A program made the position numbers and the translations under genes. A stretch of 63,053 nt of DNA, filler included, from Pelomyxa schiedti (Eukaryota > Protista > Evosea), in the NCBI GenBank assembly GCA_020536535.1. It is 13 parts of 13 records of this genome, joined end to end, with 100 filler letters (N's around TTAATTAATTAA, not from the genome) between each part and the next. Parts side by side here need not be neighbours in the genome. Positions count along the whole stretch, not along the records: positions 18,388 to 22,745 come from JAHLWZ010001602.1; 12 more parts are not named here. The stretch is one strand, 5' to 3'. The first letter of the stretch is position 1. The number at the start of each line of letters is the position of its first letter. The notes beneath the pieces are model-generated. The model saw only the letters and a program-made list of their open reading frames with translations, was not told where the DNA came from and made no database searches. Of the stretch, positions 18,388-22,845 are shown piece after piece.

Positions 18388-18574
18388 AGGGAAGTTGCTC
18401 TCAGCCATGTGCCACGACTCTGTGGTTGTTAGTGTGATTTCTTGTTTTGACTGCACATGGATCCAGGTTTCTGATGGGAACAACCGAATCCCTATCGCAA
18501 CCAAATCCACAATTAAATAATCATTTTTGTCAAAAGACATCTCTTTCCAGGAATCATCAACAGACACATTAATA

Positions 18575-19708
18575 ATGATGGACGAAGCGGCAACAGTCCA
18601 CATCGAACACCAGACCGACGCTCGTGACCAATTCATTGCCCTAGGCGTTGGAGTTATTGTGGGACGGTGCGGACGCTACAATGGCAGCCCAGTGTGGGTC
18701 CTCACTCCTTCGTCGTTGTTGTGGCTCGGACGAGAATGGGTCGTGTACCCCGCCAGGCTCCTCGTCCTGGAGTCGATGTGTTGGGAGTTCAGCAAGTTCA
18801 GCGTGTCGCCGACGCTCGGCCTCGTGCACCATCCCACAATCATCGACTTCGGGCACAACACCGTCAGTTATGTCTACGGCTGGGTTGGGCCCCGGTCCAC
18901 AGGCTACAGGTTTGCCCTGGCCCTGGCCCAGGCCGACGACGCCCAGAAGGTGACGGTGATCGACACGACCAGGCGCAGCAAGGACCTGAGGCTGGCCGAC
19001 TGTCTGAGCCTGAACGGACCCTGGTGCAACAACAGGCGCTGGGTTGCGGCCGTGAAAAGGGGGCCTCCCCAGGAACACCTGACACTGTGGAACTTTGACC
19101 AGGTCGACCGCGGCCGGGTCGGCAAAGTGGACGGCGTTGCCCTGCCATGGAAAGTCAACAGGATCGCCTTTGGAGGAGGCGACGGTTCGTTGCTCGCGAC
19201 GCACGGCGGCGGCCTAGCTGCCATAGACCTCGAGGCCACGTTTTCGCGGAACAAGGCGGTGTGGAAGCCGGTGCCGCTTGTGCCTGCCGTTGACGGGACG
19301 TGCGACATGGAATATGTGGTGTGCTGGAACGGGAGGACGTACGCGTCGATTTATGAGAGAGATGGGAGCCCTTGGCTGCGGTGCCTGACGACTGGCCGGC
19401 GTAGTCTGCTGCGGCACCCAAATACGCGGCCACTTGGTGGGCCTTACATTTCCATGCTGGCCTCCAACAAAAAAGGGCGTCGGCTCGAGGTGTACAGTGT
19501 CCTTGAGCCGACCAAAGTGTGCCGGGTGTACACGGCACAGAGCCCAACTCAAAAGTTGTATTTTGGGCACGAGATGGTTATCAGGGAGACTCTTGGACAA
19601 CAAGTCACCTGCTCTTTTGACGGTAACACCATCGAGGTCATGGATGCAGCGACCGGCTTCCTTGTCTTCAAAATGGTTGTCCACAACTTGCTGGGCCTCC
19701 GTACGTAA
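18575..19708 (+). CDS. Orphan family A protein, intronless
   Basis: ARDQFIAL..GRCG..GREWVV..SVSPTLGLV..CNNRRW..IDLEATF..VMDAATG. Confidence 0.78.
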   Translation: MMDEAATVHIEHQTDARDQFIALGVGVIVGRCGRYNGSPVWVLTPSSLLWLGREWVVYPARLLVLESMCWEFSKFSVSPTLGLVHHPTIIDFGHNTVSYVYGWVGPRSTGYRFALALAQADDAQKVTVIDTTRRSKDLRLADCLSLNGPWCNNRRWVAAVKRGPPQEHLTLWNFDQVDRGRVGKVDGVALPWKVNRIAFGGGDGSLLATHGGGLAAIDLEATFSRNKAVWKPVPLVPAVDGTCDMEYVVCWNGRTYASIYERDGSPWLRCLTTGRRSLLRHPNTRPLGGPYISMLASNKKGRRLEVYSVLEPTKVCRVYTAQSPTQKLYFGHEMVIRETLGQQVTCSFDGNTIEVMDAATGFLVFKMVVHNLLGLRT

Positions 19709-19883
19709 TTGAATCGAGGGTGGAAACTACGTTCGAACGTCTACAAGACGTCGCTGAGCAGAGAGGGACACTGAGACATCTCAGAGGTAGGTTGTTTGCA
19801 ATAATGCTTGCAACGAGGTAATACTTCATGAGTGAGACACCCAAGTCTGTCTGGAAAGGATATCCTCTTACTGAGAAAAAAAA

Positions 19884-21260
19884 ATGTTCATTACCTCCAC
19901 GAGGCCGATGAGTACTTCTGTCACCACGGCGAGGTCGCAAGTGATGGCGATGTGCTGTGCGTCCCTGGTCTCGGTTCGGTCCACTCCCATAATGACAACT
20001 CTGCCGGGCACTGCGCCGACGAAAACAGCCCCCGGTGAACCTTCAGTCGGCATTCCCAAACCAAATCCCCTGTTTTCGATGACGCAGTGGGCGCGATCGA
20101 CGGCGCTGTTCAGGCAGTGGGCCGAAGAGTGGGTACTGTACCCATTGTGGGACGCTTTTTTCACCCTTCCAGTGGTGGGAAAAACCCCTGGGGAGGCTCG
20201 ATGTTCTCTGCTTGCGAGTGTTTCAATCACTCTGGGTGTGGTGAATATCTCTTTGTTCAGCCATGGTTTTTCTGAGATACTATGTGGATGCATTGGGGAC
20301 AACAGGGTTCTGTCAAAGCGTTTCCCTGCAGAACAAACCAGTAGGGATACAGAAGGTCATCCTGGTAATCAGAGAGACTTGCCTGAGGCCTCCCTGGCGG
20401 CCTGGGACCGAAGAAAGGGCATAGTGTGCAACAGGAAGTGGATTTTGGGGCACAGCGATACAGAAGGAGTGCCATTGCTGTTCATTCACAAGGTAGAGAA
20501 TGGCGCACCTGTTGGAAATGATGTGGCCGTCACTAACAAGGACATCAGGATGAATATCGGTGACTTTGTCAATCTCACTGAGTTCACGCCCCTCGGCGAG
20601 GATACTGTGATTGTGCATGGCACAGTTGGTGAGAGAGCAAAAATAAAGAAGTATATTGCTGCGTTTGTTGACTTGGAAGCCACCTTCAACAGCAAGGAGC
20701 TTGTTGTCAAATCAAAGATTGTATGTGACGCACCTGCCAGTGGGTGCACACTGCTCCTTCGGTGTGTGACGTGGCTCCCTGATGGTTCCCCTTCCGTTTT
20801 GATGACTGAATTGGTCCTAGAAGAAGCCGACCTGTTTTTGAAGGGTCACACACTTGTGGATGCATCGTCGGCAACAAGGTTGGAGTGTTTTAATGGCAAA
20901 CTGGTGAACACTCTGAACAAAAGTCATGTGATTGTCCGATCCTTAGATTCATTCAACTCTGGAGTTTCTGACTTCGAGGTTTTCCACATAGGGAACCTCA
21001 CCCAGCCATTACTTTGCCTTCCATGCACTTGGGCATGCTCCAACAGCCAATCAGGCCTCATTCTCTCAACATCATACTTCAACAGTGAAAAAGAGGATAG
21101 GCTCGCACAAGATTTTCCAACCTCTCACCCAAGAAATCAGGGTGGCCACAACAGTGCAACAGACATTGAGTTCTCACTGCATGATGGTGTCACTGGATGT
21201 CACATTGGAGTGTGCACTCTGCCATTGAAGTCGTTCACATTCAAACAAGCCTCCAACTAG
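19884..21260 (+). CDS. Orphan family A protein, intronless
   Basis: ARSQVMAM..EEWVL..SVSITLGVV..CNRKW..VDLEATFNSKELVV..LHDGVTG. Confidence 0.78.
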   Translation: MFITSTRPMSTSVTTARSQVMAMCCASLVSVRSTPIMTTLPGTAPTKTAPGEPSVGIPKPNPLFSMTQWARSTALFRQWAEEWVLYPLWDAFFTLPVVGKTPGEARCSLLASVSITLGVVNISLFSHGFSEILCGCIGDNRVLSKRFPAEQTSRDTEGHPGNQRDLPEASLAAWDRRKGIVCNRKWILGHSDTEGVPLLFIHKVENGAPVGNDVAVTNKDIRMNIGDFVNLTEFTPLGEDTVIVHGTVGERAKIKKYIAAFVDLEATFNSKELVVKSKIVCDAPASGCTLLLRCVTWLPDGSPSVLMTELVLEEADLFLKGHTLVDASSATRLECFNGKLVNTLNKSHVIVRSLDSFNSGVSDFEVFHIGNLTQPLLCLPCTWACSNSQSGLILSTSYFNSEKEDRLAQDFPTSHPRNQGGHNSATDIEFSLHDGVTGCHIGVCTLPLKSFTFKQASN

Positions 21261-21449
21261 AGAAATGTCATCTTGATTTCTTACCAACAGCCTGAATTGG
21301 AGGGTTTCGAAGAAAAAACCAAAAATCACCCATAATTAATCCACAGGAGGGTCTTTTGCTAATAAAAGTTGCCGATACCAGGGAATAACCTCGACGCTTC
21401 TCACTGTGTACTTTGTGCCACTGGGGAGGTCAGCCTGATTTGCTTTGTT

Positions 21450-21809
21450 GGTGTTAGGGCCTTAGTGCTTGTCCCTCGGGGTGCTCGCAGCGGGTACTCC
21501 GGGGGGAGTCACTAGGGTCCGTCCGCCGCCCAGGGGTCGGATACAGGTTCCTGCGGGGGGTGTCCGTGCGGGTCCCGTGCGCAAGCACGGGCAGTGCGGG
21601 TGCCCTCGGCGGGGGGCTGCCCGATGACGGGGCGGATGTGGCCCAAACGCCGCAAGATTTGTCGCCGGGGGTGGCGCAGGCTGCGGGTATTCCGGTCCTG
21701 GGGGGCCTGGCTTCCCTCTCCGGGGGGCGGCTGGGCTGTCCAGGGTCGGGCCCACGGCTAACCATCTCCACTATGGCTGTGCTTGCGCCGGCTGCAGCAG
21801 GTTTTTTTT
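21450..21809 (+). ncRNA. Candidate structured non-coding RNA (~350 nt), class unknown
   Basis: GC-rich island of long helices with many G-U pairs valid only on the + strand; GCAA tetraloop hairpin 21574-21591; terminal hairpin followed by T8. Confidence 0.6.
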
Positions 21810-22845
21810 GTTTTCGTTTTGTAACCAACTGGGCTGTGTGGAAGCTAAGTACGAATTGCCTTACTTCTAGGGGTGGCAAGGAAGTTGTTATTTTGTGTGA
21901 GTTAAAGGGAAGCGAAAATATACGGCAAATTTGAAACGAAAAAAAATAAAATAAATAATGAAACGTGAAACGTAGATTTTTGTGTACCTTCTGAGTTGGT
22001 GAGATGTTAAGAAAGGATTCAGAGTGACTCCTCCGGTTCGAGATATCCAGTGTTTAGTGGAGCCGTTAATTTGGTTGTGGTACAGAACAAAAAAACTTGT
22101 CATGCTTTCGAACCTCAGGGAAGTAAACGTGTATCTGCTCAAGATAATTTTGTATGTAAAAAGGGGAATCAGTGAATATTTTTTCCAGGTTAACGTTGCT
22201 GCACTTTCGACTTCATTCGATGTAATTTGCCGCACTCCATGAATGAAGTGGCAGATACATACCAATATTCCTCTTGAAATGCGCACCACCCATGAAACAT
22301 CATGCCGTACCCCTCAGAGCCTTCACTTGCAGTGCAACTCGGCAACAAGGTGATATATTTTCAGGTTTCCTCAAGAAATGGTGGAGGCGGGGCTATTTCG
22401 GCATACTATGTTGGCCGGGCAGAGAAGAGATTTTGGTGGCAATTCTGGGGTCAATTTTGGTCTTTGATTGATGAGTCTGGTGCATTCCATCTATGTGGGA
22501 AGGAAATTCCACCAGTATGCAACTATCACAGAAGGTTTGATGGCCTCAATTCCAAGTAATCAATAGTAAACCAGGCCGCAAACGCGGTAAATCTTCAGCC
22601 TTCGGTGTGTAAGGAGCATTGGATGGGGAGAACCCCCAGAGTTTGTCTCTGTAATCACGGTAGAATCAGATGAAGATAAGAAATTGCGGCTCAGTTGTTG
22701 TATGAGCTCCCAGTGAGAACAGAGTTCAACTTGAATCTTGTACTGNNNNNNNNNNNNNNNNNNNNNNNNNNNNNNNNNNNNNNNNNNNNTTAATTAATTA
22801 ANNNNNNNNNNNNNNNNNNNNNNNNNNNNNNNNNNNNNNNNNNNN

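Follow-up and report, generated by a model that had tools for sequence, protein, structure and literature searches.

We identified a discrete, structured RNA gene on the + strand of the genome of Pelomyxa schiedti, which is mis-annotated as a protein in GenBank and whose RNA occurs in an unexplained head-to-tail form. The gene occupies positions 21393-21803 (411 nt) of the stretch of DNA analysed here (the window; 63,053 nt in 13 joined parts), inside the 4358-nt piece at 18388-22745 that comes from JAHLWZ010001602.1. P. schiedti is an anaerobic archamoeba that has been sequenced through single-cell genomics and transcriptomics (PMC8887013, PMC10579272). We consider it fairly probable that the unit is a lineage-specific small-RNA gene of this member of the Archamoebae, probably made by RNA polymerase III (Pol III), whose abundant product acts as a ribonucleoprotein (RNP) scaffold and may be partly circularised. 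An earlier note, made from the DNA sequence, had described a structured RNA of ~350 nt at this place. The structured unit stands but its size does not: the RNA starts 57 nt further upstream, at 21393, which adds a hairpin (21393-21431) and brings the length to ~411 nt.

The ends of the unit were set by sequencing runs, whose evidence consists of assembled contigs only; these are strandless, and their depth is a poor measure of expression. The runs comprised a DNA-like run of P. schiedti (X1), single-cell RNA-seq from the P. schiedti study (X3) and two independent environmental RNA libraries, one from wastewater (X5) and one a sediment metatranscriptome (X6). Contigs of X3 tile 21432-21641, 21616-21723 and 21694-21803, a further contig begins at 21393, contigs break at both ends of the unit, and depth is 63-110 on the unit against 3-9 on its flanks. 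Relatives of the unit are present in both environmental libraries, with an identity of ~90-98% that differs from part to part, and the flanking 4 kb returned nothing from either of them save one 35-nt A-rich match. Both ends of the unit are given by a head-to-tail joint, 21803|21393, that was found in contigs of three studies (X3, X5 and X6). In X5 (record 17) a contig runs from 21672 to 21803 and goes on with 21393-21419, with zero letters between; an X3 contig holds the last 11 letters before 21803 and then continues from 21393 onward; and in X6 (record 19) 21625-21675 is followed by 145 unlike letters and then by 21393-21461. A head-to-tail junction in RNA, the mark by which circular RNAs are recognised, is thus present at contig level. 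Whether the joint stems from a circle or from jumping of the reverse transcriptase (RT), it shows where the full transcript begins and ends. The earlier note had called for a search for a discrete + strand transcript; RNA-library contigs from three studies cover exactly the unit, and the transcript is probably the + strand.

Signals of a gene lie at both of these ends. The 5' end is G21393, and a TATA-like box (AATAAAAG, 21361-21368, +) is found at -32 to -25 relative to it. Four TATAWAWR sites with at most one mismatch occur on the + strand of the 4358-nt piece, this box being one of them, and we estimate at ~1% the chance of finding such a site within a 10-nt window around -30. The 3' end falls after two U of a T8 run (21802-21809), that is, at its second T, and two T4 runs follow downstream, so that the terminator as a whole (21802-21820, +) reads T8, then G-TTTT-CG-TTTT as back-up T runs. 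This T8 is the sole run of at least seven T in the piece; no run of four or more T occurs within 21393-21801, where the longest is T3. Because the ends defined by the joint coincide with the TATA-like box and the T8 run, there is strong evidence that 21393 is the start of transcription and T8 the terminator. The arrangement is that of a type-3 (upstream-promoter) Pol III gene, and it is from this layout that we infer the polymerase. The Pol III-like T-tract to which the earlier note had pointed is indeed at 21802-21809, and its reading of a + strand non-coding RNA gains new support from the box 25-32 nt upstream of the mapped start. An 18-nt inverted repeat (89%) relates the T-rich terminator (21802-21819) to an A-rich stretch 114 nt downstream (21934-21951), probably by low-complexity chance.

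The RNA of this unit folds strongly, and on one strand only. Folding z-scores compare the minimum free energy (MFE) with that of dinucleotide shuffles. For 21440-21812 on the + strand the MFE is -224.2 kcal/mol against -187.7 +/- 6.3 for the shuffles (z -5.84), and the - strand counterpart gives z -0.29. The full unit (21393-21805, +) reaches z -7.07, and an independent set of dinucleotide shuffles gave z -5.3 for the linear and -6.1 for the circular molecule. The unit contains 40% G, 21% U and 10% A; its MFE fold (-246 kcal/mol) has 158 pairs, of which 40 are G.U, and leaves 77% of the bases paired. A strand asymmetry had been deduced earlier from the G-U pairs, and the z-scores of -5.3 to -7.1 on + against -0.3 on - confirm it in the shuffle comparison of both strands that the earlier note had suggested. 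The description of a GC-rich island in AT-rich surroundings was likewise correct, with a GC content of 0.64-0.74 against 0.36-0.48 on either side.

The predicted fold begins with a 5' hairpin (21393-21431, +; GAC/GUC, CUUCUCA/UGGGGAG and GUAC/GUGC, with a UUU loop; pairing probability P 0.94-1.00). It is followed by a terminal helix, in which the 5' strand (21432-21454, +; AGCCUG, UUGC and GUUGGUGU, containing CUGAUUUGC) pairs with the 3' strand (21785-21803, +; GCGCCGGC, GCAG and CAGGUU) at a mean P of 0.70-0.93. U21803 is both the final paired base and the final base before the joint, and G21393-C21431 stacks directly on A21432-U21803, so that the 5' and 3' ends abut, nick-like, in one long helix. 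We give these abutting ends little weight, because, with 77% of the bases paired, the chance that a cut placed at random falls inside a helix is already ~0.6. Folded as a circle, the molecule gives the same structure as in linear form. Arm A (21457-21520, +) is a 29-bp hairpin with a 3-nt loop, built of 11 + 3 + 15 bp (P 0.65-0.98). Arm B (21526-21635, +) is a long irregular hairpin of 44 pairs, 10 of them G.U, with P mostly 0.96-1.00 and a CCCGUGC-GCAA-GCACGGG cap whose tetraloop lies at 21581-21584. The central core (21637-21663, +) consists of a small hairpin (21637-21654) and then the single-stranded AGAUUUGUC, with nine unpaired bases. Arm C (21664-21777, +) is a long hairpin of 45 pairs with its apex at 21714-21727 and a base that uses CCAUCUCC (21762-69); its upper part has P 0.94-0.99. 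The helices listed by the earlier note were all found where it had placed them: 21457-67/21510-20 (11/11 pairs, 2 G.U), 21473-87/21491-505 (15/15, 4 G.U), 21521-27/21631-37 (7/7), the GCAA-capped hairpin (7/7), 21638-44/21749-55 (6/7), 21697-710/21731-44 (13/14, 4 G.U) and GUUAG/CUAAC (5/5).

Some parts of the molecule have more than one partner. An alternative closing pairing could join GGGGAGGUCAGCC (21423-35) to GGCUAACCAUCUCC (21756-69). In addition, the top of the GCAA hairpin (21579-21590) has 12-bp complementarity, with one G.U, to 21777-21788 (duplex energy -32 kcal/mol). Going by this calculation it could form a pseudoknot or a conformational switch, and it competes with both local folds. 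The arms also share sequence. Direct repeats of 23 nt with 78% identity link arms A and C (21480-21502/21673-21695) and arms B and C (21598-21620/21709-21731), with GCGGGUAYUCCGG and CCCUC..CGGGGGGC as common motifs, and the arms may have arisen through internal duplication. The heptad AUUUGUC (21657-63) of the conserved core lies unpaired between two hairpins in an AU(3-6)G-type Sm/Lsm context, and a second GAUUUG occurs at 21437. As the motif was spotted after the fact, we regard AUUUGUC as a candidate Sm/Lsm-type site, a lead rather than a finding.

Conservation can be viewed through contig pieces and three substitutions. Against 21393-21461 the X6 relative (record 19) shows 1 mismatch and 2 gaps in 69 nt, and the most often matched stretch is 21601-21675, with alignments from five separate X6 contigs inside it. 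In arm A, by contrast, an X6 contig loses all resemblance just past 21461. At arm C, one X6 relative carries ~145 unlike letters instead, and in X1 a second partial copy either lacks 21671-21764 or has other sequence there. The pattern that these pieces partly show, of a conserved 5' region and central core with seemingly replaceable arms A and C, would be that of an RNP scaffold. All three visible substitutions turn a Watson-Crick pair into G.U on the + strand, and each would be a mismatch on the - strand: C21527U (X6, arm B) changes C-G to U.G, A21587G (RNA run, tetraloop stem of arm B) changes U-A to U.G, and A21654G keeps the pair with U21637 as U.G. As about one third of random changes at paired sites retain pairing, three out of three would arise by chance with a probability of ~0.04. 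Position 21587 is A in the DNA-like run and G in the sole RNA-run contig, which may be a difference between cells or strains or a change in the RNA. The second partial copy in X1 (21600-21800 of the window) has a depth of ~11, carries A21654G and shows a joint 21670->21765 by which arm C is skipped or replaced; as the A21654G variant is also present in the RNA run, this paralogue may be expressed. Searches of other collections returned little: an exact DNA pattern found 31 loci in JGI metagenomes, none extending past 20 nt by BLAST, and two patterns found none or 3 chance loci in GTDB genomes.

The RNA belongs to no family known to Rfam. A cmscan of 4227 families at E<=10, run on the whole piece and with lax filters on a 431-nt stretch alone, returned chance matches only in this check that the earlier note had proposed, and in the 431 nt no RNase P, MRP, signal recognition particle (SRP), U3, 7SK, small nuclear RNA (snRNA), telomerase or ribozyme model was matched. 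Hallmark motifs are equally lacking on both strands (GNAANNUC, GAAAGUC, RUGAUGA, GAUC, ACAGAGA, GUAGUA, CUGANGA and GAAA). For RNase P and MRP this means neither a covariance-model match nor the CR-I-type GNAANNUC/GAAAGUC of a P4 pseudoknot; for 7SK, neither a model match nor GAUC; and for the spliceosomal snRNAs U1, U2, U4, U5 and U6, neither a model match nor GUAGUA/ACAGAGA. For U3 and box C/D RNAs RUGAUGA is missing, a single GAUGA (21623) lies in a helix, and a single CUGA (21435) lies 5' of GAUGA. SRP helix 8 carries symmetric and asymmetric internal loops near its GNAR loop. No Rfam SRP model was matched, and the GCAA loop, which fits GNAR, caps a perfect 7-bp stem. A viroid-like or self-cleaving RNA finds no ribozyme model match and no CUGANGA/GAAA here, and the unit has an unstructured - strand (z -0.29) and a single-copy nuclear locus. 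The earlier note had also suggested CTAACCATCT as a possible telomere template. For the common telomere repeats this found no support: among TTAGGG, TTTAGGG, TTGGGG, TTTTGGGG, TTAGG and TAGGG, none has a template (repeat + 2 nt) on either strand, and CUAACC at 21758 equals one TTAGGG-type repeat exactly, leaves no bases for alignment and is placed inside predicted helices. Of the classes it had named as examples, a lineage-specific one stands, and RNase P/MRP, telomerase RNA and 7SK are without support. Other candidates were considered and set aside. The 8-nt identity of positions 3-10 with the U2 5' end was taken as coincidence, an expansion segment or spacer of ribosomal DNA does not agree with single-copy DNA depth and unique flanks, and an 11-nt GNRA receptor (UAUGG / CCUUAG) is inexact, its CCUUAG being paired in arm A.

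How else could the locus be read? GenBank carries a gene model here, Pelo_18035 (P0012; 124 aa, "hypothetical protein"; exons 21765-21499 and 21440-21339, - strand), which lies antisense over the RNA, and several frames hold long open reading frames (ORFs). The RNA might then be the mRNA of Pelo_18035 or of another short ORF, with its fold a by-product of GC-rich coding. We find this extremely improbable. The three codon positions have much the same GC content (0.65-0.70) in every one of the six frames, and the 141-aa and 97-aa minus-strand frames have no relatives among 5.8 billion clusters beyond Pelo_18035 itself, so that the check for protein-coding conservation returned only the contig's own annotated model. 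Pfam is silent on the neighbouring ORFs, the model requires an intron and a frame change, the RNA contigs stop at 21393, inside exon 2, and at 21803, short of the start of the 141-aa ORF, and the strand asymmetry of the fold favours +. Given the flat codon GC, the want of relatives and the RNA contigs that end within the model, we judge Pelo_18035 to be spurious, most likely an artefact of unstranded RNA-seq hints. Alternatively, there may be no dedicated gene at all, but a GC-rich spacer, a repeat fragment or a copy of a viroid-like or viral RNA that was transcribed or captured by chance. Shuffled sequences of a composition so rich in G runs still fold well, the arms are linked by internal partial repeats, and X1 holds the second partial copy. 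The depth of X1, however, is ~13-30 and equal over the RNA element and its flanks, and its contigs (records 6 and 8) extend past the element on either side and enter unique sequence; from this even depth and these unique flanks we conclude that the genomic locus is single-copy. Promoter-like and terminator-like signals stand exactly at the ends of the RNA, a core is conserved in environmental relatives, a ribozyme core is absent and the - strand is unstructured. In IMG/VR, scans with four patterns yielded either 13 chance loci or none, and no true match. A locus without a gene is hence highly improbable in our view.

Two further possibilities deserve more credit than these. The unit could be a universal RNA (RNase MRP or P, SRP, U3 or telomerase RNA) in a form peculiar to Pelomyxa, with GC-rich expansion arms that mask its core and a divergence too great for Rfam. 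Its size, its Pol III-like layout, its conserved core with variable arms and its apparent abundance, even in environmental RNA, would all be in keeping with this. Moreover, homology searches miss telomerase RNAs in particular, which in plants and ciliates come from type-3 Pol III genes (PMC12133305), while LARP7 family proteins without a known RNA partner occur in Amoebozoa (PMC7928011). Nevertheless, the empty cmscan, the missing hallmark motifs and telomere templates and the perfect stem under the GCAA loop speak against it, as does the order of the domains: a 5' hairpin followed by a strand that pairs with the 3' end mismatches P1-P2-P3-P4. For telomerase in particular, the enzyme may be lost in the related Entamoeba. 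On these grounds we hold a disguised universal RNA to be unlikely. The other possibility concerns the form of the RNA. Its functional form could be a covalently closed circle, made from a transcript that is trimmed to ...GGUU and self-ligated, the linear form being only a precursor; the ligation site would be a nick inside a continuous helix, CAGGUU|GACGCUUCUC against GGGGAGGUCAGCCUG. In favour of a circle, the same clean joint without extra letters recurs in three independent RNA studies, including in relatives that are ~93% identical, the two ends meet in the fold, and circle and linear molecule fold identically (z -6.1 for the circle). In related Entamoeba, circular non-coding RNAs are documented (PMC3294279, PMC6085484). 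The joint-spanning contigs of X5 and X6 have a depth of 5-6, like other contigs, and every word across the joint came through assembly in these low-depth runs, which suggests that the joint is not rare there, provided that k-mers seen once are lost from such contigs. Against a circle, the X3 contigs speak rather for template jumping: one ends exactly at 21803, and the one that spans the joint includes just 11 letters from before 21803, as though it were crossed by few reads. A Pol III 5' triphosphate needs processing before a ligase can use it, abutting ends are weak evidence where ~0.6 of cut points lie in helices, and end-to-end template jumping of the RT on very abundant RNAs yields an identical joint. 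It thus seems doubtful that the circle is the functional form, and we would extend no greater belief to the fuller proposal that a pelobiont Pol III-type primary transcript of ~411 nt is ligated whole into a circle and works as an RNP RNA with a conserved core. A substantial circular fraction in vivo is a somewhat better prospect, though a tentative one. Familiar routes to such a joint were tried and rejected. A hammerhead at the joint would have GUU| fitting NUH and CUGAU after the 5' hairpin, with the core G8/A9 and GAAA missing; a group I intron circle is at odds with the last base of the unit, which is not G, and with the lack of a model match; and for a spliceosomal intron circle GU..AG ends are absent on either strand.

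Several points weigh against a Pol III-made RNP scaffold too. The TATA-like box has one mismatch, and the case for Pol III is one of layout. The contigs carry no strand, and the contrast in X3 contig depth between unit and flanks is a poor measure of expression. Shuffles of such a G+U-rich composition reach ~-207 kcal/mol, so that the pairing is partly compositional, and the closing helices compete: GGGGAGG pairs with CUUCUC or AUCUCC, and CCAUCUCC with GGGGGUGG. Three substitutions are very few. Finally, everything said about function is deduced.

With these points in mind, we propose the following course of events for a lineage-specific RNA gene. Transcription would begin at G21393, ~30 nt past the TATA-like box, and end in T8, with a layout as in the Pol III type-3 genes for U6, 7SK, RNase P/MRP and plant or ciliate telomerase RNA. 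The 411-nt product would form the 5' hairpin, three long arms rich in G.U pairs and a small central core in which AUUUG motifs stay single-stranded, and its terminal helix would hold the 3' UU end tight against the 5' end. As a stable, abundant RNA of a lineage-specific RNP, it could offer the single-stranded core and the juxtaposed ends as protein-binding sites, probably for proteins of La/LARP or Sm/Lsm type. A fraction of the full-length transcripts would then appear joined head to tail, either because the nick is sealed into a circle or because the RT jumps between molecules.

To our knowledge, almost no non-coding RNAs of Archamoebae have been catalogued beyond those found through Rfam. 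Yet here an apparently abundant RNA, seen in wastewater and sediment RNA libraries that are otherwise empty for the locus, has no family and was filed as a protein. Should it prove to be a new RNP scaffold, it may supply the RNA that an orphan RNA-binding protein of Amoebozoa lacks, for LARP7 is known there without 7SK or a Pol III telomerase RNA. If the head-to-tail form is a real circle, it would represent a new eukaryotic route to circular RNA, and the circle would be of a non-coding kind that stems from neither intron, exon, spacer nor ribozyme. In practical terms, the GenBank gene Pelo_18035 should be re-annotated, and the conserved 5' and central cores are a possible marker for pelobiont amoebae in environmental RNA data.

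Two tandem ORFs lie upstream of the gene on the + strand, at 18527-19708 (393 aa) and 19884-21260 (458 aa), and belong to a multigene family seen only in P. schiedti. Neither contains a Pfam domain. The matches of the 458-aa ORF are solely P. schiedti hypothetical proteins (E down to 3.5e-111), encoded on contigs that belong to assembly GCA_020536535.1. In the DNA-like run, parts of the tandem ORFs are covered 100-450 deep and show numerous alternative joints, which indicates many diverged genomic copies. In three contigs with paralogues of this ORF family, a second copy of the RNA element is absent beside them, and the 4358-nt piece has no tRNA genes.

How does this RNA compare with known systems? 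Archaeal RNase P, SRP and C/D RNAs are circularised by RNA ligase. Circular RNAs of Entamoeba, which offer precedents within the same amoebal order, are 5' external transcribed spacer and intron RNAs (PMC3294279, PMC6085484). As in these archaeal and amoebal examples, a whole functional RNA appears joined head to tail, with its ends side by side in a helix; unlike them, the Pelomyxa RNA would be the full primary transcript of a stand-alone gene rather than a spacer or an intron, and its circularity is read from contigs only. With nuclear RNase P/MRP it shares its length, GC-rich variable arms, a likely Pol III origin and a long-range helix that joins distant parts, and differs in the absence of a covariance match and of the CR-I motif and in the order of its domains. 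7SK is a metazoan type-3 Pol III scaffold RNA bound by MePCE and LARP7, and we know of none outside animals. The two are alike in size class (~330 against 411 nt), in a TATA box near -30 and a T-run terminator, in a 5' hairpin, in a 3' U end beside the 5' end and in several arms round a conserved core, whereas the Pelomyxa RNA lacks an Rfam 7SK match and GAUC. The Pol III telomerase RNAs of ciliates, plants and some insects have the same type-3 promoter logic and U-tailed 3' end, and they too keep their structure where sequence homology has become undetectable (PMC12133305); the Pelomyxa RNA differs in having no repeat + 2 template for the six common repeats. Although membership in either class is not supported, by its working principle the Pelomyxa RNA would seem to stand nearest to 7SK and the Pol III telomerase RNAs.

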